Assembly: GCA_040285825.1 (NCBI GenBank)
Contig: JAUPSS010000001.1
Span: forward strand, 2,976,001 to 3,040,000
Source: Eukaryota sp. TZLM1-RC
Lineage: Eukaryota > Protista > Metamonada: BaSk clade
Direction of reading: 5' to 3'
DNA: 64,000 nucleotides
The translations under genes and the position numbers were made by a program. Under the pieces are notes generated by a model. The model worked only from the letters and a program-made list of their open reading frames with translations, made no database searches and was not told where the DNA came from. Positions 4,038-63,711 of the stretch are shown one piece after another (within the stretch, counting starts at the first letter, position 1; every line of letters begins with the position of its first letter).

Positions 4038-5424
<1,387 letters not shown>

Positions 5425-13090: not shown

Positions 13091-13567
13091 TTAAACATCG
13101 TAATCATGATACAAAAAGTTTCTACGTTTTATCGCCTTGATGTTGTTCAAGTATCTGATGAGTTGCTTTTCTATGCGAGGAGCAGCTCCACCAAAGACAA
13201 CGAAACGCGAGAGCGGGAATGTGAAAAAGACAAAAATACATGCACGAGAAAGAGGCCAAGCTATGTGAGCAGCAACGTACTTGCAGAGATAGACTGTGAG
13301 AAACATGTGCATGGTAGCTCCACTCCAGCACAGGAAGAAGTAGAAGAGAACAGAGTATAAACGGGAAACAGGGAAACGATTGTATATGTATTTGCTGCAG
13401 CAGACATAGTGTAAACTACCTCCGAGTATGGCCCCCAACATTGCCGATGTAGAGACCGAGCCGGTGATGTGGTTCGAAACTGCAAATACTAAGGCATCAA
13501 AGAAAGTGGCTGCTATGGAAGACAGAGTGGAACGCCCGAGATCAAACAACAACGACGCCTTAGACAT
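13091..13567 (-). CDS. GtrA-like 4-TM small membrane protein
   Basis: Four hydrophobic segments with the GtrA pattern AT..D..VF / A..G...G....Y...S..Y / ..SR......F..SR.VVF; 158 aa. Confidence 0.65.
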   Translation of the reverse strand: MSKASLLFDLGRSTLSSIAATFFDALVFAVSNHITGSVSTSAMLGAILGGSLHYVCCSKYIYNRFPVSRLYSVLFYFFLCWSGATMHMFLTVYLCKYVAAHIAWPLSRACIFVFFTFPLSRFVVFGGAAPRIEKQLIRYLNNIKAIKRRNFLYHDYDV

Positions 13568-13706
13568 TGAAAATGGAGAAACTTTGTATTAACTGTGAAT
13601 TTTACTTATCATGCATTCCCCTATGAAATTCACTCCTGTTTTCAACTTTCTCAATGTCTACTCACAGGCTGTAAGAGACATGTAGCGTCATTTGACAAAG
13701 ACAATC

Positions 13707-14228
13707 ATGAACTTCATCAATGGGCTACCTCACTTAAATACTCCTAGAAAGAATTTCCAGTTACCCTTCTTCTCTAACATTGTTTCTTGTAGTGTAGGTG
13801 TTCATCATACATTGGCACTCACTGCTTGTGGTAATTGCTATGGATTTGGTCTGAAAAAATTCTACCAATTAGGCAACAACTACCCCCAAAGCAGCACTTT
13901 CAAATCTCAACAACCACAACTACTTCTATCCAATGTTCTCTCTTTTGCTACTGGTGGACGTTATTCCCTTATCCTTACCTCTGATCACAAGCTTTATTAT
14001 TCTGGGAGAAACGACTTTTTTCAGTGTGGAGTTGGTGATGAAACTTTGATGGCAACCTGTGATTATTCTGAGCTTAATGAACCAATAGGTCCTTTTGGCA
14101 GTGTTTTCCTTCCTTCCTTGACTTTAGTTAACTCGAAGGAAAATATTAACATTGAGCTAAACGAACGAGAGCTGGAAGCCCTTTTCAATACTGTTGAAGA
14201 TATCTCTGTTCATTTAGACAATCTGTAA
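13707..14228 (+). pseudogene. RCC1-repeat gene fragment, paralogous to the RCC1 part of 57194-58758
   Basis: SVGVHHTLALT..G..YGFG....QLG and ATGGRYSLILT....LYYSG.N...QCG RCC1 repeats. About 13745-14103 is near-identical to 57205-57492 on the - strand. Confidence 0.65.
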
Positions 14229-14569
14229 TAAAGTAAGTTATTTTGTTAATAAATAGTTGATGTTTTTTGTTGTTTATTTGAACATTATTGGCACGTTATT
14301 ATGGTAAGAAGCTCCTGAACTGTGTGTTCTAGGTTTTCTGTGTTTTATGTCTACACCATTAAGTAAAAGTTGAAAACTAAGGCCCATAGATGTCGTAGGG
14401 AGAAACCAGACGTTGGTGCAAGATCTGGTTGGTGAAAAAAAATTACACCAAAATGCAACCAAAGTGAAAACCACAGAAAAGTTTTTTACATTTTTTAATT
14501 GTAAACATTTTATTACTTTCAAAACAAACTATACGACAACTAAACATTTTATTAAAAGTTTATTTTTTA

Positions 14570-52667: not shown

Positions 52668-54886
52668 ATGTCCTTTTCATTCAGTACTGGACAGACTAAT
52701 CAAACAACAACTCCTAGTTTTTCCTTTTCAGGTCAACCAAGCACAACTCAGCCTGCTAGTACGTCAGCTTTTGGATCTACTACATCGCAACCTTTTGGAT
52801 CTACATCCCAAACAACTTCATCTCAACCTTCATCTTTATTTGGAGGTGGACAGACAAGTCAACCTACAACAACCCCCAGTTTTTCCTTTTCAGGCCAACC
52901 AAGCACAACTCAGCCTGCTAGTACATCAGCTTTTGGATCTACTACATCGCAACCTTTTGGATCTACATCCCAAACAACTTCATCTCAGCCTTCATCTTTA
53001 TTTGGAGGTGGACAGACAAGTCAACCTACAACAACCCCCAGTTTTTCCTTTTCAGGCCAACCAAGCACAACTCAGCCTGCTAGTACGTCAGCTTTTGGAT
53101 CTACTACATCGCAACCTTTTGGATCAGCAACACAACAGACGACCACACAGTACGCCACTCCTACCCAGGTTCTTCCCGCTTTTCATCCCTTCTCTGAATC
53201 CACCAAGTTTACCGATCTTCCCGCTGAACTCAAGGACCAATTATCCAAGTTACACCAACACATTCATCAACATCGCGTCATTACTCGGTCTATAACTGCG
53301 CCGGAAACTGCCAAAGAACTCAAAGACACTCGTCTTCTTGAAAAAGATGGGCCACTTTCCTCAATTCTCAATACCTCTCATACTCTTCTTCAACGTTATG
53401 TAGATGTAAGAAGGAAGGCGGATCGTTTATGGCAGACGGAACAGTGGTTGTCTTCTGATTTATCTGTTGTCCTTGGTAATTTCGATCTAATAAAACATCG
53501 TGTGTTACCCTCGTTTTCTTTTAAAATTTAACCTCAGAACAAACATGGAATGTTCAAATACCATCACCTCTGTTTGAGCGGCTGATTTCTGAGTTTGAGA
53601 GACAGATCTCCAATCTTCATGCTAGGACAAATAGCATTGCCATGGCCCTTACTCAGCCACGAGGTGCCCATCCAGAGGTACTAAAAGATTGCCTCCGCCT
53701 TCATCAGTGGTTTATTGTTAAATTGGGCAATAGAGTTACAGAGACTGATCAGTTCTTGAGTAGTAGGCTTAAACGAGCATTTCTGGAGTTTGTATCCAGA
53801 TATAAGCCAGCTATTGGAGAAGCTTTCTTTGATTCTATAGAGTCATTGGAAGCTGCCAAGTTAATGCTGTCCACAACGACTGCAGGTACTTCTGGAACGA
53901 CAACTACTACTGGAGCTACTCCGTCCTTTGCATTTGGTCAAAGTCAGCCATCAACAACGGCTGCAGGTACTTCTGGAACGACAACTACTACTGGAGCTAC
54001 TCCGTCCTTTGCATTTGGTCAAAGTCAGCCATCAACAACGGCTGCAGGTACTTCTGGAACGACAACTACTACTGGAGCTACTCCGTCCTTTGCATTTGGT
54101 CAAAGTCAGCCATCAACAACGGCTGCAGGTACTTCTGGAACGACAACTACTACTGGAGCTACTCCGTCCTTTGCATTTGGTCAAAGTCAGCCATCAACAA
54201 CGGCTGCAGGTACTTCTGGAACGACAACTACTACTGGAGCTACTCCGTCCTTTGCATTTGGTCAAAGTCAGCCATCAAAAACGGCTGCAGGTACTTCTGG
54301 AACGACAACTACTACTGGAGCTACTCCGTCCTTTTCATTTGGTCAAAGTCAACCATCAACAACGACTGCAGGTACTTCTGGAAAGACAACTACTACTGGA
54401 GCTACTCCGTCCTTTTCATTTGTTCAAAGTCAACCATCAACAACGACTGCAGGTACTTCTGGAACAACAAGTACTACTGGAGCTACTCCTTCCTTTTCAT
54501 TTGGTCAAAGTCAACCATCAACAACGACTGCAGGTACTTCTGGAACAACAAGTACTACTGGAGCTACTCCTTCCTTTTCATTTGGTCAAAGTCAACCATC
54601 AACAACGACTGCAGGTACTTCTGGAACAACAAGTACTACTGGAGCTACTCCTTCCTTTTCATTTGGTCAAAGTCAGCCATCAACAACGACTGCAGGTACT
54701 TCTGGAACGACAACTACTACTGGAGCTACTCCTTCCTTTTCATTTGGTCAAAGTCAGCCATCAACAACGGCTGCAGGTACTTCTGGAACAACAAGTACTA
54801 CTGGAGCTACTCCGTCCTTTTCATTTGGTCAAAGTCAACCATCAACAACAAGTGCTAGTTCACCCACCTTCTCTTTTAGTAAGTAA
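52668..54886 (+). CDS. NUP58: FG-repeat nucleoporin, Nup58/Nup49-like (about 726 aa, one 38-nt intron)
   Basis: N- and C-terminal FG/FxF repeats flank a helical core (KF.DLP; P.PLF..L..EFE..I; H.WF..L). Intron 53500-53537 (gtgtgt...ttaacctcag) joins the two ORFs in frame. Confidence 0.75.
52689..53125 (+). repeat. Coding tandem repeat, 159/162-bp unit, about 2.7 copies (N-terminal FG domain)
   Basis: Units start at 52689, 52848 and 53010. Confidence 0.9.
53873..54844 (+). repeat. Coding tandem repeat, 81-bp (27-aa) unit x12 (C-terminal FG domain)
   Basis: Unit TT(A/T)AGTSGTT(T/S)TTGATPSF(A/S)FGQSQPS is repeated 12 times. Confidence 0.95.
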
Positions 54887-55203: not shown

Positions 55204-56052
55204 TTAATGATCTCAAACCCTTTCAATAATAATACAATGTTATGTTGTCAAATGTTTGTTTGTGTCGGCCTAAGAATATTAACTATAAATATTTATATTA
55301 TTTATTATATTTATATATATTATATCAAATCTTTTTCTACGAAGAATCAAATAAAACAAACTAAAACACATAAGAAACTAAATTCTCCACGCCAACTCTT
55401 GATGAATCCTTATAAAGTTTAGACATCATTAAACTCAAGTATTTGGGAACACTTCTGTACAAAGCGAAAATGATACGATTTTTCCATAAATTCTCTGCAA
55501 AATTCTTACCACTTGAACGACATAAATTACCAAAATCATTGATGAAATTCATGGCGGATTGTCCAATGTTGCCAAAAATCGAAAAGGCAAAAGGAACAAA
55601 CGAAAACTTCGAATAAAGGTTCTTATTTAAATCATTTAATATCTCAGTATATTTATCTCTCTTACGATCTTCAGCCTTGTTTAAATGACCATTAGTACTA
55701 AGTAAAACATCATCGCGATAAACCAAAGCAAAGGGATCAACTGTAGTGAAATCAACAACAACTTGAGAGGAATCCACAAAAGGAGCAATTAAATCACCTC
55801 GACGTGAATTAAAAAGATTATCATCACTATAATGCTTCAACAAAGGTTCTACTTTGCAACTAAAATTGTAACACTTGAACATCTCATATGTCACATCACG
55901 AACGGCATTATGAAGAACTGACCTATATTGGAGAAATTTCTTACAGCTCACAAAATTTATATTTATATTATTTAAATACCAAACAAAATTTAATATTGAA
56001 TGAATATTAACCGACAAACATGCATTATGTATCATATTATCGAGACCATTAA
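55204..56052. mobile_element. Putative ~180-bp MITE hosting a nested retrotransposon fragment
   Basis: TIR ttaatgatctc / gagaccattaa (10/11) plus further imperfect inverted similarity. Flanked by ttta at 55200-55203 and 56053-56056. Confidence 0.45.
55305..55958 (-). mobile_element. 5'-truncated CRE-like retrotransposon (family E), RLE domain
   Basis: RSVLHNAVRD, RRGDL, VDFTTVDP, AE..KRDKY, FVPFAFSIFG, WKNRI. 16-bp direct repeat atatttatattattta at 55289-55304 and 55959-55974. Confidence 0.85.
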
Positions 56053-56689
56053 TTTAGATGTAACTTTGTATTTCCACTTTCCTTCGCAATTAGTGGTTTG
56101 ACAGGAGAATTGTTGGTGACTTCATTGTTCTCCACAATGTCTTCTGAGCGAGGTAGTTTTCCTGGCCTCATTTTCTGGTCGGTCAATTGCCTTCTTTTCT
56201 TCTCAAAGAATTTCTGTCTGCGAATATAGTTTGAAGGCTGTCCAATAGATCTGTTGCTCTCCTGAACCTCGGTTACTTTGTCTGTTTGGACATCATTCGG
56301 CGATAACATCCTGTGGTATCAGACCTTTTTGTTTTAAAAATAAAGACGCTTGACTCTACATTGTATACTTTTTAAGGTTGTTCAAAAACAAGGTTTTTAA
56401 ATATGATTAAGTGTAGAAGACCTCTTTGTCAGTTTTGATAGAGTAGACACGTACATTGGTATTTGCTTCTAAGGAAACACCTCATCTACTATTTTCAAGG
56501 TCATGTTCCCAGTTAAGTAATTGTTTGAAAGAATGTGCTTCATAGTGGATGAAATACAACGATTTTTCCAAAAACAAATAATAATAAATAAAATAAATAA
56601 ATAAATAAAAAGAACAAATTGTCGAACTACAAAAACCCGAGAATAAAGAGAACGAAGAAGATTCTAATTATATTATATTTTTTCAACTG

Positions 56690-57180
56690 TCGTGATTTGA
56701 TTGTACCCTTTACTAACTCATCTCAGGCGGTTGTTGATTTTACTACCGTTGATCCTTGTGCAAAAGTGTACTTGTCTTCAGTTTTTAATGATGAAAATTC
56801 GCATCTGTGTCAGGCGGAGGCACGTAAGAATCAGTTGTATGATGAAGTAATGAGGAATTTTAATCAAAATTTATACTCTTCTTTTGTCTTCATTCCGTTT
56901 GCAATTTCGATTTTTGGATGTATTGGTAAGATATGTCAAAAGTTTCTTATTCTTTTGCCAAGTTATGTCTTGAACCTAACAGATTATTTACCATTTCCAT
57001 TTGGCGTAATAGAATCATCTTTGCTTTATTTCGAAGCTTTCCCAAATACTTGTCTCAGATATTCAAAAAGTTATATAGAAGTGTAAGGGTAGATGTAGAG
57101 AATTTTTCTTCTTATAAGTTCTAGCTTTTAGCTGTATGTTGTCCCTCTATAATAATAATAAATAAATAAATAAAAAGAAC
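56690..57180 (+). mobile_element. CRE-like retrotransposon 3' fragment (family E-related) with (TAAA)n tail
   Basis: RDL..VDFTTVDP, AEARK..Y, FIPFAISIFG, WRNRI; contains a frameshift. Confidence 0.8.
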
Positions 57181-57193
57181 AAATAATAATATT

Positions 57194-58758
57194 TTAGATC
57201 AAATCACTGCCAAAAGGACCTATTGGTTCATTAAGCTCAGAATAATCACAGGTTGCCATCAAAGTTTCATTACCAACTCCAAACTGGAAAAAGTCGTTTA
57301 TCCCAGAATAATAAAGCTTGTGATCAGAGGTAAAAATAAGGGAATAACGACCACCAGCAGCATATGAGATTGGTATAATTTGTTCAGACCAAATCCATAG
57401 CAATAACCACAAGCAGTGAGTGCCAATGTATGATGAACACCTACACTACAAGAAACAATGTTAGAGAAGAAGGGTAACTGGAAATTCTTTCTACCAGTAG
57501 CATGAGGAGGAAAATATCGGGAGAGAACACCAGGTGTTGGAGATGAGAATAAAGAAACCGAAGGTGCAACAGAGCCAATAAGATTGATTCGTTTTGTGCG
57601 AGACCAGAGAATTGTTTTTATAAATTGAAATTTATTTTGAAACGCTAAGAAAACATTAAACAAAAAACTAGAACTCAATATCCTCAATACACGCATCAAC
57701 ATCATCAAATCTTTTAAGCGCGCGATTTTCATACTCTATTCCTAATTGTCACAGTGCTTTGGTCAACATTTCTGGAATTGCTTTAAGAATACTAAAAACA
57801 ATTCTATTGCCAGATATTCCAATGTTACCAACAAGAGAAACAGCAAATGGAACCAACTGATACTTGACATGCTCAACACGTCCTAGCTGAGATAAGGGTT
57901 CATTGTACTTTTTGATTTTGCTCTTTTCAGCAAAGCAAAGTGGAGTTTCATCTCTTTTAGCAAAATCAATTGCTGAATCTTTACAAACATCAACAGTGAC
58001 AACATCAACAACTTTAATAACACCATCAGACGCAGGTGTAATTAAATCAGCACGGCGTTTCCCAAAAGTATTTTCATCTTCATTTTCAGTTGACAACCTT
58101 CGCACAAGTGGTTCAACAAAAGCTTCAATGTGATGACTTTTGCACATAGCGTATAGTTGGTCTCTAACAGCATCGTGAAAAACTGAGCGATATGTAATAT
58201 TAAATTTACAATTGAATAAATGATTCAGATTGATGAGCTGACCACAACGACAAATCAATTCATTTGGCACACTGTGTGGCCACAGAAAACACCTCATCCT
58301 GAAGGCAGTTGTCCATTGATGATCATTTAATAATAGACCATATACATTTGGAATCTGGGAAATAAGACAACTTGAGCTACTATCCTTGAGGTCAATTAAA
58401 AAGTTTGCAAAAACGGGATTCTTTTCTTTAGCCAAGCTAAGACGAACAGTGAAATCCAAGTCTTCAAAAACTTTTAATATCTTTTTCTGCAATTTAGCAT
58501 ATGCAAATTTCAAGGAAATCAAACTCCTGGGTGGAATTTCTTGAATATCAGAAGGAAAGCATTTGGACCATATGGGAGAATTGAGTTTCCTTTAGATATG
58601 TAGCGAATTCTGTGAAATGGTATAGATAAGGCAAGAAAATCGTGAAGAGTGAGGAAGAATACACCACCAAATCTATCCTCAAAACCAACAAAGAAACGTT
58701 CTTTGGACAAAGAAGTAACGTGGACTAATCTGTTGATGATGCTGAGAGCGTCTTTCAT
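57194..58758 (-). pseudogene. MJ1316-domain / RCC1-repeat fusion gene split by a retrotransposon
   Basis: Removing 57615-58575 plus one TSD copy gives in-frame MKDALSIINRL...FFVGFEDRFGG...IPFHRIRYISKGNSIL|WSRTKRIN (MJ1316-like), followed by RCC1 repeats. The RCC1 part has a deletion/frameshift. Confidence 0.75.
57615..58575 (-). mobile_element. 5'-truncated CRE-like retrotransposon (family A-related)
   Basis: CRCG...HLFNC, HDAVRD, RADL..VDV, AEKSK.KKY. 8-bp TSD gagaattg at 57607-57614 and 58576-58583. Confidence 0.9.
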
Positions 58759-58963
58759 GAGTTACATAGAGTTGAAATTCCAGAAAATTTTAAAGGATAC
58801 CTAGTTTATGAACCTAGTTTATGAAGTGAGGGGAAAGTGTGGGAATAGCGAAAACCTTCCAAAACCAAGTTGAGGGTTAAAAACCTCCCAGAACAGGCAA
58901 CAAGAAGTTGAAAATGGGGTGACAAGTGTAAGATTTGATAAATGAGCTGTTTATCCTCACTAT

Positions 58964-61406
58964 ATGACAGACACCCACTCTGTGTCACGTGTATTCACTT
59001 GGTCTTATGCACTTAACTCACTGCTCACCCCTGCAGCGGTGCAACAAATTCGAACTGACCTTCCTTTGGTCACCGAGATTTGCCATGAAGCTTCTTTATT
59101 GCTTCAATTTTTTCTTCTGCAATCTCAGAATTGTAATTTTATCAATAGAAAAGGGCTTTCTCCTTATTTTGCTTGTCGGGCTCGTCAATTGGCGTCTAAC
59201 GTGAAGACAAGTTTACCTAAAATTTGTTAATCCTGTACAAAAAACTTTATTCGTGCTCATTGTAGAGCGCTGGATAAAACAAATCTCTTTGCAAATAATA
59301 TTCTTTCACTTTTGCCAGATGAACCATTAGCCCAACCCGAGGAAGTAGTAGTTGATTCTGTTCTTGAATACCTCATCAATTTCAATTTGAATAATTCAAG
59401 AGAAAAATTCTTTTTATTAAATGCATGTAGGTTTATCTTGAATCTCCTTCAAAGATTTCCTATTACTGCCTCCCTACTGTCCTCACATGATAAAATCATC
59501 TTTTCATCAAAGGAAATTGGTGAGCTTTTTCTCTTCAATCTTAAGATTTCACAATACTTACTCACTTTCATTTCTCATATGCATTGCTGGAAGAAATTTA
59601 GAATAATACCTTTAGCTTCTTATAAAGGTTCTAAATTAATTCAGGTACCTTCACATGTTTTCCACTCTGTGAAAAAATTTCCACTTAATGCAAATTATCT
59701 TCCAAAAGAAAGTTTATCAGAAATACATGTCTGAAACGAATATTCAAACAATTTTCTTACCAAAAATTCAATATAAACAGAAAAAGTTTGAAAAATAGAT
59801 TTAAAAATTTTTTATTGAAAACTAATGGTAATGAACTGCTTTTGACCTTTGAAGGTAAAAATAATGACTCAGAAAGCACAAATGAGCTGGAGGAAGCACC
59901 GAAAAAGAAAAGAAGATCAAAAAATGAAATGAAAAGTGACCCTGATGCCAACAAAACCAGAGAAACACAGTTGAAGAGCACAAAAAAATGCCCCGTCGAA
60001 GACGTAGACATCCAGTCGAAATTTCACCTGAAAGGCCCCTTGTTGGTGTTGATCTGGGACAATCAAGATTATGTGGTTACTTCTTAAATGATTATCAATG
60101 TGGAGTTATCCCTTGTCCAACTGGCAGAAGAAACCAGTGTTCGGAATTTTGACCACGCGGTGGTGTATTTTTTAGCCTATAAAATGCTGTTACCTTCTGA
60201 CATTGTCAAATCATTATGAATAAAACATGTTTATTTCAACTAACAAATACTTAACCCATAACTCATCTATCGAACCAAAAAAGCATTTGAGATCGATCAT
60301 ATCATTCCTCCTCAATGTCCTCCGAAACATAAAGATTTCTGAAATAACAAGGATCGTATAGGACTTCCTCGTCCAGTGGATAATCTACTTCTTGGTCCTG
60401 CTCTGCAACTTCTACCTCTGCAACTTCCTCCATCTCTTCCATCATCTCTACTATTTCAGCATTCATCCATTTGGGGTATTCTTGACGATTGACCAGCAGT
60501 TTCTTCTTTAGTTTAATTAATTAATTAGTTTAATTAATTTAGTTTAAGTTGCAATAGATGAACACTAAGGACTTCACTGGTCATTCTATTTCGCCTTTGA
60601 TTGATTATGAAACCAAAAGCTTAGGGGAAATGCATTCAAAAACAGGGTGTTTTCTACCAGGCCATGGCATTTAGATGAAAGGAGAAGGGAATAATGAAAT
60701 GAAATTGACCACCAAGAAAACCACCATGGTGGCACCAACCACCACGTGGTCCACCTGGTGGTAAAATTGAACCACCTGGTGGTGTCCGAACACTGGAAGA
60801 AACATGACAAAACCTTCACCCAGTAAACACTCTCCCAACCAATATTCCGTTCAAAATATCAACCCATATTTGAACCATTGGAATTTGGTCAGGAGGAAAG
60901 TGTATTTGGAAAGTAATCGCCAAAAATGGAAAATAATTAAATTTGATAATCGAAGACGAAAAGAGAGACGGTTCAGAGAGACTCTCAACAAATTTCAAAG
61001 GCTGGCTGGACATCCTGATAAACTCTATCTTGCTGTGCGTTCTGCTAATTTCCCTTTTCATTGCCGAAAAGTCAATCGATATGGATCAGCAAGAGCTTTC
61101 AGAAAATGGTTGTGTTATCAAAAGGACGTGAAGCACTTGTCAACCAGTGAATTTAATACAAGCAAACTGTCAAGTTGTTGCATGGCCGAGAATATTCAAG
61201 CAGGATCATGGCAGATGCGTAATTGTACTGAGTGTCAAATAGTATATGACAGAGATATTTCCGCTGCAAAAAATATTCAAATTAAGAAGAAAGCGGAATT
61301 GTGGCCAGAAAGATACATTTGCCCAGATGCTCTGTTGAGGAGATTGAATAGGGGCCGTGAGCATACAGAAACAAAAACTTTTGAGACCGATCTACAAATG
61401 CCTTAG
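58964..61406 (+). pseudogene. Fanzor1-type RNA-guided endonuclease gene (TnpB/Cas12-like RuvC), disrupted; about 590 aa reconstructed
   Basis: N-terminal VTEICHEASLLL, F.IIP, LKTNG...L.F, RuvC-I VGVDLG (D 60051-60053), RuvC-II SEFNTSK (E 61149-61151), Zn-ribbon SSCC...CTEC, RuvC-III DRDISAAKNI (D 61254-61256). Lesions: TAA at 59228, frameshifts near 59700 and in the A7 run 59982-59988, and a hAT MITE insertion. Confidence 0.87.
60135..60795. mobile_element. Non-autonomous hAT element (661 bp) inserted in the Fanzor gene
   Basis: Perfect 11-bp TIRs cagtgttcgga (60135-60145) / tccgaacactg (60785-60795). 8-bp TSD gaagaaac at 60127-60134 and 60796-60803. Subterminal palindromic ccacctggtgg-type repeats. 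Confidence 0.93.
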
Positions 61407-61560
61407 TAGCATTTGGTAGATCCACTTAGATACATCAAGTCGCGAGGCTTTGTTCTGTGAAAGCAGTAGGTGTATTTAAGTGAGGTAGGCCATTGATGAA
61501 GATCATGATTGTCTTTGTCAAATGACGCTACATGTCTCTTACATCCTGTGAGTAGACATT
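61389..61560 (+). ncRNA. Putative Fanzor omegaRNA scaffold
   Basis: Hairpin 61389-61422 over the stop codon. 14-bp stem 61423-61436/61469-61482 with two G-U pairs encloses aagtc-GCGA-ggctt and ctgt-GAAA-gcag tetraloop hairpins. A further hairpin at 61532-61559. Ends uncertain. Confidence 0.7.
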
Positions 61561-61616
61561 AAATAAGTTGAAAACAGGAATGAATTTCACAGGCGAATGT
61601 ATGATAAGTGAAATTC

Positions 61617-63643
61617 TCTTTTTTAAAACTGGAATATTTATTGAAATAAAAACACCCAGCTGGAATTCAATATCCTCCAAACAAGCGTCACTATTACTAA
61701 ACCTACTCACAGCATTACGTTCATATTCTACACCAATAGCTAAAAGTGTCTTTGAAATCATTGTTGGAATAGACTTGAAAAAACAATTCTATTTAACCAG
61801 AACGTGGAATTCATTGTTTTACCAGACCTATTCAGTAACACTTTTTTGAAATTTTCAAAAAGGTGCAACCCTGAAGGTCCAATATTGCGAAAAAGAGAAA
61901 TTGCAAACGGCACAAACTGATATTTCACATGTTTCACTCTACCTAACTGTGCCAAAGGATCTTCATATTTATTTATCTTCATTTTTTCGGCGTTAGATAA
62001 CGTCTAATTAGCGGAATACACTAAACGAGCAGCAGAATTTTTGCAAACGTCAATTGAGACAACATCTACAACATTGAGAACACCATCGATCCCTGGAGCT
62101 ACTAAATCTGCCCTTCTTTTACCAAAGGAATCATCAGTTTGATCTAAAGACAGCTTACGTACTAATGGCTCAATAAATGCCTCTATATTGAGCCTTTTGC
62201 ACATGGCATATAATTGATCACGAACTGAGTCATGAACAATTGAGCGATAAGTTACAAAATACTTACAGTTTAAAATATGGGAAAGCCTAACAACACACTC
62301 TTGCAGCGACAAATTAAATCATTTGGTAAAGAACAAGGCCATAGAAAACATCTCATTCTCATTGCAGTGGTCAATTGGTGATCATTAAGTAGAAGGCCAT
62401 AAATGTTGGGAATTTGGGAGATTAGGCAACTTGAGCAACTGTCTTCAAGGTCAATCAAAAAGTTTGCAAAAACGGGATTTTTTCTCTTAAGCCAAGACGT
62501 ACAATATAATCCAAGTTTTCTAAAACTTTCAAGATTTTTTTCTGCAATTTTGCAAAAGTCAGTGGTAAGGAGAGCAAGCTTCTTGAAGGAAGTTCCACAT
62601 TATCAGAGGGGAAACACTTGGCCCAAATATTGGGTGAAAGAGTTTCAATTTCCTGTTGCAAAGAAATAAGATAAGAGCTGCCACAATTTTCAATAAGATG
62701 CATTTTTTCAGGAAAACGATACACAAATTCATAAATAAAATTCTTTCCACCTCCAATAAAGGCAGCTTTACAAAGGTGGCTTGATTTATGAAAATCAACA
62801 CCTCCAAAATTTGTACCACAAAAAATGCGACTTCGTAAAAATATTGAAGATATTGAGTTCTTTTTTAATGTTTTGTTAGCGTTGAAAAGTGGCTTCGTAA
62901 CTGAGATGCATCGATTTCCAATAATTTTGCTAAAAAATTGGTTCTTTGTTCATTAAAAATGCGACAAAACTCCAAAGAAATTGATGGTGATGTTGATCTC
63001 AAAATATGAGTAAATTTTCGAGAATAACAGATTTTTAGGAAAAAGAATTTCAAATGTTTCTCAATATTTAATTTTTCTATTGATTCTAATTCATTTCCAA
63101 ATTGAGTCAACAGAGTCGAAAGTTGGCCTTTGACTTCATCAATATTTCCGAGATAACAACCCAAAAAACGAAAACCAGACTGATCATAATTGATAAAGGG
63201 GACATTGACATCATTAATGAAAAAATCAATTGGTTCATGGCCAATAATCAAACATTTGGAGATATTCAATGAGAGACCAATATCTTCATTACGCTGTTGA
63301 ATAAAAGTTGCTAATTGTTTGAGAATTGTAATAAGAGCAATTACAGAAATGTCATCCATATATGCTACAACATCTATTTCTGGGAATTTTTCTTTTAATT
63401 CGCACATTAATGGATGAATTGCCAGACAAAAGAAAAAAGGACCAAGTGGATCACCTTGTTTAACACCTGAAGACGAAAGCAGGACAAAGTTTTCATAGAC
63501 CAATGTGGATGATTTTCGATAAAATGAATGGAAAAAAGGCTCAATTTCAGGAAAATGCTTTCGCAGCAAAGTTAAAATGGAAGAACGAGATACAGAATTG
63601 AAAGCATTCTTAAAATCTAAATTGAAGATGTAATTAGAATCAC
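61617..63643 (-). mobile_element. 5'-truncated CRE-like non-LTR retrotransposon (family A)
   Basis: LDFKNAFNS, GVKQGDPLGP, AYMDD, FLGCYLG RT motifs followed by knuckle and RLE. 12-bp TSD taagtgaaattc at 61605-61616 and 63644-63655. Confidence 0.92.
62839..62888 (+). mobile_element. 50-bp 3'-tail-only retrotransposon insertion nested in the family A copy
   Basis: Matches the 3' end of the 57615-58575 family. Flanked by gcgacttcgtaa (62827-62838) and gtggcttcgtaa (62889-62900). Confidence 0.65.
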
Positions 63644-63711
63644 TAAGTGAAATTCACAGTACATCAAATCTCCAGTCACTTTCCATTATACTATCTCTTT
63701 ACATAGTATAA

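Follow-up and report, generated by a model that had tools for sequence, protein, structure and literature searches.

A decayed copy of a probable non-autonomous Fanzor1-type element in the metamonad Skoliomonas litria

The genome of Eukaryota sp. TZLM1-RC, the type isolate of the free-living metamonad Skoliomonas litria (PMC11603281), contains what we regard, with a probability of roughly 0.8, as a decayed copy of a multicopy non-autonomous element, the core of which encodes a 650-aa Fanzor1-type endonuclease and a 3′ omegaRNA scaffold. The copy lies in a window of 64,000 nucleotides (the whole stretch of DNA that was analysed, to which all positions without a locus name refer), which is AT-rich, gene-dense eukaryotic DNA with many fragments of non-LTR retrotransposons. 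What is new is the occurrence of DLG at RuvC-I and of a TIR-less, one-ended element in a divergent Fanzor1-type family. The following features make up the copy and its surroundings.

57201..58758, minus strand: left-arm cargo with MJ1316 domain and RCC1-repeat fragment, head-to-head with the Fanzor gene, interrupted by a retrotransposon (57615-58575, 8-bp TSD)
58807..58963, plus strand: conserved 5′ leader of the core element, with a start common to all copies of either arm type
58964..59230, plus strand: N-terminal Fanzor piece (start of WED, and REC), with an in-frame deletion and, at its end, a nonsense codon
59231..59693, plus strand: REC/WED piece in the same frame as the preceding one, with a 1-bp deletion at its end
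59694..59981, plus strand: WED piece with the TNG motif and a basic stretch that, judged by its residues, resembles an NLS; ended by a 1-bp deletion
59982..60134, plus strand: RuvC-I piece, read from the sequence, with VGVDLG and the catalytic Asp at 60051-60053
60135..60795, no strand assigned: hAT-like non-autonomous insertion of 661 bp
60804..61406, plus strand: REC2, RuvC-II, zinc ribbon (SxCC/CxxC) and RuvC-III
61345..61616, plus strand: structured and conserved 3′ region that ends in a hairpin; from fold z-scores, a candidate omegaRNA scaffold
61617..63643, minus strand: CRE-like non-LTR retrotransposon with an RVT_1 match and a 12-bp TSD (61605-61616 / 63644-63655)
63644..63659, plus strand: true right end of the element (...TTCACAG) once the retrotransposon is removed
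13593..14289, minus strand: second, internally deleted copy, in which an RCC1 arm directly abuts the final ~150 nt of the right end

An earlier note on this DNA had proposed that four plus-strand ORFs, starting at 58964, 59312, 59788 and 60804, are pieces of one TnpB/Fanzor gene, and this is confirmed in essence. The ORFs are collinear, and sibling proteins in S. litria read straight through every junction, holding the N- and C-terminal pieces in one protein. Neither outcome that would have contradicted the note came about: profiles and structure do match the TnpB/Fanzor RuvC, and the N-terminal pieces belong with the C-terminal ORF in other genomic copies. The first two ORFs share one frame across a single TAA, and TGRRN joins MTKPSP in frame once the insert at 60135-60795 is removed. 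This insert is hAT-MITE-like, as the note had said, with perfect 11-bp TIRs (CAGTGTTCGGA) and an 8-bp TSD (GAAGAAAC) at 60127-60134 and 60796-60803; short TIRs starting with CAG and an 8-bp TSD are what we take to mark the hAT class. Every sibling has the empty site, and no second copy of the insert was found in the window or in 12 loci. As for the frame change placed in the A7 run, the frame at 59988 does carry VGVDLG, but its cause is a T missing before the run (59981) rather than a changed run length; a homopolymer error at the run was rejected, since the missing base is a T.

Two further views of the locus had to be revised. The gene is not hidden but belongs to a high-copy family with at least 46 annotated fragments; four protein clusters by themselves contain 32 annotated members. 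A protein search with the C-terminal ORF (60804..61406) gave 20 relatives, which are 66-94% identical to it and belong without exception to Eukaryota sp. TZLM1-RC. Nor do the limits 58964-61406 hold, because the element runs from ~58807, where its core starts, to 63659, past the retrotransposon insertion.

The core shared by all copies is ~2.4 kb long and extends from ~157 nt 5′ of the ATG to ~272 nt 3′ of the stop codon. Its 3′ region is conserved and ends in a hairpin and CACAG, and the right end is identical among copies. In the window copy, the CRE-like insertion sits in the 3′ arm of the terminal hairpin and splits it, which places the true right end at 63659; the flank beginning with the next base (63660, an inferred boundary) would supply the putative guide. 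Against shuffled sequences, the 3′ region folds with z-scores of -3.4 (window) and -3.75 (a sibling), compared with +1.9 for a coding control, and the minus strand folds about equally (z -3.3), so that folding shows no strand specificity. Zero compensatory pairs were found in the 3′ RNA among the copies, which are too alike, and the region has no Rfam match. From its folding and conservation, this stretch of ~270 nt is a candidate omegaRNA scaffold.

The left ends, in contrast to the right end, are variable, and consist of an MJ1316-RCC1 arm, a CCT 3′ fragment, other RCC1-tail arms or unrelated filler. A 13-bp direct repeat (58799-58824) marks the joint between the MJ1316/RCC1 arm and the core; copies that have the other arm type contain only one unit of it. 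An MJ1316 RNA-end-recognition domain with an RCC1 fragment is carried as cargo by five copies (for example, 57201-58758 on the minus strand of the window and L002:5372-5794). The CCT chaperonin 3′ end that adjoins the copy at L008 on its left (L008:7250-7675) is carried by the copy at L002 (L002:4688-4850), which points to capture of a flank from the donor locus. This CCT cargo is in the sense strand and retains an intron-like segment in two copies. CRE-like retrotransposons occur repeatedly in or beside the Fanzor element (57615-58575, 61617-63643 and 55361-57184 in the window; L003:6398-7750), and two Fanzor copies (the small one at L011, and L012) lie within CRE sequence. At L004:1448-6347, two Fanzor subfamily copies and other repeats form a composite within one 11-bp target duplication.

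Each right flank read begins with T followed by A or T (TW), and in four copies right-flank sequence is repeated at the left limit, giving TSDs of 13, 11, 10 and 11 bp. For the window copy the only TSD candidate, at 55321 (11/12), is non-significant, with 0.13 such matches expected by chance; no TSD was found for L001, L008, L009, L010, the copy at 13593 or the copies of the related Skoliomonas sp. RCL. Nothing consistent that could serve as a TAM was seen across the four left flanks, and no left end matched the right end within three mismatches at the copy boundaries, as TIRs would. Helitron ends (5′-TC / CTRR-3′), asymmetric TIRs and a RepHel partner were not found, the end being the hairpin and CACAG. 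The note had seen no partner transposase next to the gene; likewise, we found none among the window ORFs, none at a conserved position in 13 loci and the window, and no IS607 serine recombinase among the called genes of the 13 loci or the ORFs of the window.

The S. litria element thus shares a fixed 3′ end, variable 5′ ends and TSDs, captured sequence and the lack of a transposase with the Fanzor1 elements CRe-1/2/3 of Chlamydomonas and MCi-2 of Mucor. In those elements the 3′ end is intact and the 5′ end truncated or variable; they have TSDs of variable length (7-19 and 11-12 bp), extra captured sequence after the 5′ TSD and no transposase of their own (PMC3627910). The S. litria element differs from them in that no Helitron2-like termini or TTTT target were found, the target starting with TW, and in that its right ends lean to same-strand gene starts and its cargo consists of MJ1316/RCC1 and CCT fragments. 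By analogy with characterised Fanzors, the scaffold transcript would run into the flank, which would serve as the guide, and the enzyme would cut element-free versions of the site, the repair of which would restore the element; in this RNA-guided cutting we have high confidence. New insertions would come from DNA-level copying in trans, a one-ended process that begins at the right end, terminates at different positions on the left and takes host fragments along. For this second step, modelled on the proposal for Chlamydomonas CRe-1/2/3, our confidence is moderate.

The copies may alternatively have spread by retrotransposition, with a CRE-like non-LTR reverse transcriptase copying the Fanzor transcript in trans, in the fashion of a SINE, although we consider this unlikely. 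Truncation at the 5′ end, a fixed 3′ end and variable TSDs are hallmarks of non-LTR elements and fit the Fanzor copies; in addition, the CRE insertions of the window have TSDs of 8 and 12 bp, and several Fanzor copies lie in or adjoin CRE sequence. However, no poly(A) or A-rich tail was found on the Fanzor right ends, whereas the CRE ends here are A-rich, and the sense-strand CCT cargo with its intron-like segment is difficult to reconcile with this route. Moreover, the element ends exactly at CACAG, whereas a guide-bearing RNA would continue.

The position of the copies relative to host genes was also compared. The window holds ordinary host genes, among them a polyubiquitin gene and FG-repeat nucleoporin-like genes (4050-5222 and 52668-54886). 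Of 11 right ends, seven are followed at 18-113 nt by a same-strand start codon, the distance being approximate for one of the seven, which has a degenerate end. In the window copy, 52 nt separate the right end from the start codon (ATG, 63712) of a host ORF of RING type; in the deleted copy (13593-14289, minus strand) the corresponding distance is 25 nt, to the ATG at 13567 that opens an ORF for a membrane protein of 158 aa. Null rates at the same loci were 0.07-0.26, giving p values from 2e-6 to 0.009, with a null that relies on automatic gene calls and a small sample of 11 ends. The proximity to start codons is a tendency, which survival bias in a compact genome may also explain. Exact docking at start codons was rejected for this family, as the offsets range from 18 to 113 nt.

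Relatives of the family in Skoliomonas sp. RCL bear on how such elements may move. One of them, P0065 (L007:7001-10972), is an intact open frame of 1323 aa that comprises a DVEPNPG 2A motif, an Exo1 nuclease, an acidic linker and a Fanzor. Its Exo1 part matches human EXO1 with E 3e-39 and conserves the acidic catalytic motifs, and P0065 is 31% identical to the window-family majority over 747 columns, nearly the whole length of the majority; the piece at 58964..59230 aligns from residue ~581 of P0065 onwards. A second RCL family, 64% identical to the first, has the same 2A-Exo1-Fanzor layout, and broken copies from these two families lie at L005:3923-7980 and L006:3800-7149. A literature search found no paper describing an Exo1-Fanzor1 fusion. 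Only ~45 nt follow the stop codon in the RCL fusion copies, so their omegaRNA probably overlaps the end of the coding region. Upstream of the intact fusion, a PAZ-Piwi Argonaute gene lies head-to-head with it (L007:3110-5803); this neighbour is absent at L005 and L006, so the arrangement is probably due to chance. The P0053 cluster, with seven members of exactly 592 aa each and DPN at RuvC-I, is probably a young, intact Fanzor family. Together, P0065, P0047, P0048 and P0053, which are undescribed database proteins, resemble the window family in the orthologous Fanzor region (28-31% identity) and fall into one clade of the RuvC tree (0.92), but they have DPG or DPN where the window family has DLG.

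These fusions give some substance to a scheme in which the Fanzor drives its own spread by cutting, end resection and copy-in through gap repair, with exonuclease fusions in its relatives aiding resection. Skoliomonas would then harbour a transposase-free Fanzor1 class that makes its own breaks, prefers promoter zones and has repeatedly recruited exonucleases, such as Exo1 in the sister family, that bias repair to copying. The lack of a transposase in the 13 loci and the window is in keeping with it, as are the nearest relative being an intact Exo1 fusion with the acidic catalytic residues of human EXO1, and the internal deletions and captured flanks, which look like abortive gap repair. Known Fanzors, however, cut well downstream of the TAM, which leaves the duplication of the first 10-13 nt unexplained. 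Furthermore, a guide taken from one flank cannot specify unrelated new sites, and neither a 2A motif nor an exonuclease was found in the window family. We therefore consider the scheme quite improbable and retain one-ended copying in trans as the preferred route of new insertion.

The note had assigned the protein to a divergent Fanzor1 family, and an assignment to a divergent Fanzor1-type branch is supported by profiles, by language-model and structure neighbours, and by motifs. The C-terminal piece passes the cut-off of Pfam Cas12f1-like_TNB (PF07282) with E 6e-7. A family profile matched a 593-aa protein that is typically Fanzor1-like (probability 98%, 293 columns), the alignment covering the WED, RuvC and zinc-ribbon motifs, and the atlas neighbours are NCLDV and eukaryote TnpB-domain clusters of 600-800 aa (score 0.97-0.98, TM 0.69). 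A RuvC model of a sibling (P0044:120-357, pLDDT 73), which includes a long REC2 helix, had only TnpB, Fanzor and Cas12 among its top structure matches (Foldseek E 1e-5, VIA Z 11.9). Fanzor2 and Cas12f came first by E-value and Z and SpuFz1 by query TM-score (0.53), so the structure shows the TnpB/Fanzor superfamily but not the subtype. A full-length model of P0047 (pLDDT 36) was set aside. In a 17-sequence RuvC tree (FastTree) with unsupported deep nodes and no characterised Fanzor1, the family lies apart from the Fanzor2-like group; neither this tree nor the RuvC-only structure separates Fanzor1 from Fanzor2.

The motifs and the size were compared with those of known Fanzors. Fanzors are defined by replacement of the canonical RuvC-II Glu by Gly or Pro, with an alternative Glu six residues ahead of the zinc finger (PMC10711439, PMC10530073). 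The family majority has AVGSANF at RuvC-II, where Gly takes the place of the canonical Glu, and SEFNTSK with the alternative Glu; the pattern D-X(125-275)-[TS][TS]-zinc finger-RD is present in the 650-aa majority (D446, NTSK ~589, CxxC 612, RD ~621). This ORF, with its expanded REC, lies in the 600-700 aa class of the Fanzor1 proteins SpuFz1, GtFz1 and PpFz1 (PMC11423790, PMC10711439), with which it also shares the D-E-D RuvC and a structured, non-coding stretch at the 3′ end of the element. Where other Fanzor1 proteins have TDG in WED, the family has the similar TNG (12/12 siblings), which lines up with TDG in P0082 and with SDG in P0048. Unlike these Fanzor1 proteins, the S. litria family has a shifted first Cys pair of the zinc ribbon, reading SxCC, and DLG for DPG, and its element has no TIRs or transposase. 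With Fanzor2 and IS607 TnpB (ApmFz2) the family has in common a rearranged RuvC, and the RuvC-only structural score is at least as high as that to Fanzor1 (Z 11.9). Fanzor2, however, is shorter (~400-520 aa), is partnered by an IS607 serine recombinase, lacks the TNG/TDG motif in WED and forms a separate tree clade.

DPG is found at RuvC-I of Fanzors "near exclusively" (PMC10711439), but DLG was read in 29/35 siblings and in the window copy. The sister RCL families retain DPG and the S. litria family nests among them (support 0.99), and the Leu is therefore most likely secondary. Among 1.84 billion representatives, the only strong matches outside S. litria were two Skoliomonas sp. RCL proteins (42%); outside Skoliomonas, no relative better than E 3e-5 was found in the 1.84 billion proteins, and a metagenome scan yielded no relative of the family. 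It is very improbable that the gene is a TnpB of prokaryotic type from the D-hydrophobic-G / alternative-Glu clade, separately acquired or a contaminant: DLG does fit the motif of that clade (PMC10711439), but the family groups with DPG-bearing RCL families at the identity given above, has 650 aa with Fanzor1-like WED motifs, reaches at best 26 bits with NCBIfam TnpB against a cut-off of 100, far under the prokaryotic models, and has its copies among eukaryotic genes on megabase contigs.

Measured against the majority frame of seven aligned copies (650 codons), the window copy is dead, as the note had concluded, and bears seven lesions. These are a 240-bp in-frame deletion near 59119, the nonsense codon at 59228-59230, 1-bp deletions near 59693 and of a T at 59981, the 661-bp insertion, a Gly-to-Arg change in RuvC-II (61038; Gly in 27/28 siblings and Arg in this copy only), and an extra base at 61344 that abolishes the normal stop and appends 20 non-family residues. 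The RuvC triad had been called intact: the catalytic D (60051), alternative E (61149) and RuvC-III D (61254) are present, but the conserved RuvC-II glycine is the Arg just mentioned. The estimated size of ~590 aa follows from 650 residues less the 80 deleted plus the 20 gained with the lost stop, and with 80 codons gone, this copy by itself does not suffice to rebuild the gene. No intact gene was present in the nine S. litria loci read. Nearest to intact is the copy at L008, with two frameshifts, both in homopolymers, that could be nanopore errors, but with Tyr at the RuvC-III Asp. Substitutions shared among the seven copies have an omega of 0.28, compared with 0.63 for private ones (Fisher p 0.0009); the shared changes are under purifying selection and the private ones much less so, as expected of a once-active family decaying after insertion. 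After its insertion, the window copy itself would have succumbed to deletions, to point changes and to three insertions nested within it.

Reads at the A7 run and near 59700, which the note had recommended checking, add frame-restoring bases, but speak for the family rather than this locus. High-depth Illumina-derived contigs (three DNA runs, one study), which are collapsed and equal the family majority, show the bases absent from this copy (T following 59981, G following 59693) and do not have the additional base at 61344; they also skip the 661-bp insert and both retrotransposon-type gaps that they cover. It is hardly credible that the breaks are assembly errors in a family that is intact in the cell. 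The assembly was made from R9.4 nanopore reads corrected with Illumina data, and the homopolymer frameshifts at L008 and the frame-restoring bases agree with this idea. Base-calling errors, however, cannot produce a nonsense codon, a deletion of 240 bp, two retrotransposon insertions or a 661-bp insert with TIRs and a TSD, and the collapsed contigs do not reflect this locus.

The copy in the window is itself only a dead relic; it is the family to which it belongs that extends Fanzor1 to Metamonada, and a literature search found no paper combining the two. The lineage has no close relative elsewhere and, as a naturally occurring departure from the DPG fingerprint, would be missed by searches based on this motif. 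In the sister species, the intact Exo1-Fanzor1 fusion is a natural version of a fusion built by genome engineers. The one-ended, TSD-making layout without a transposase reopens the question, raised in 2013, of how Fanzor elements move, and in a genome with dozens of copies this question becomes testable by counting.
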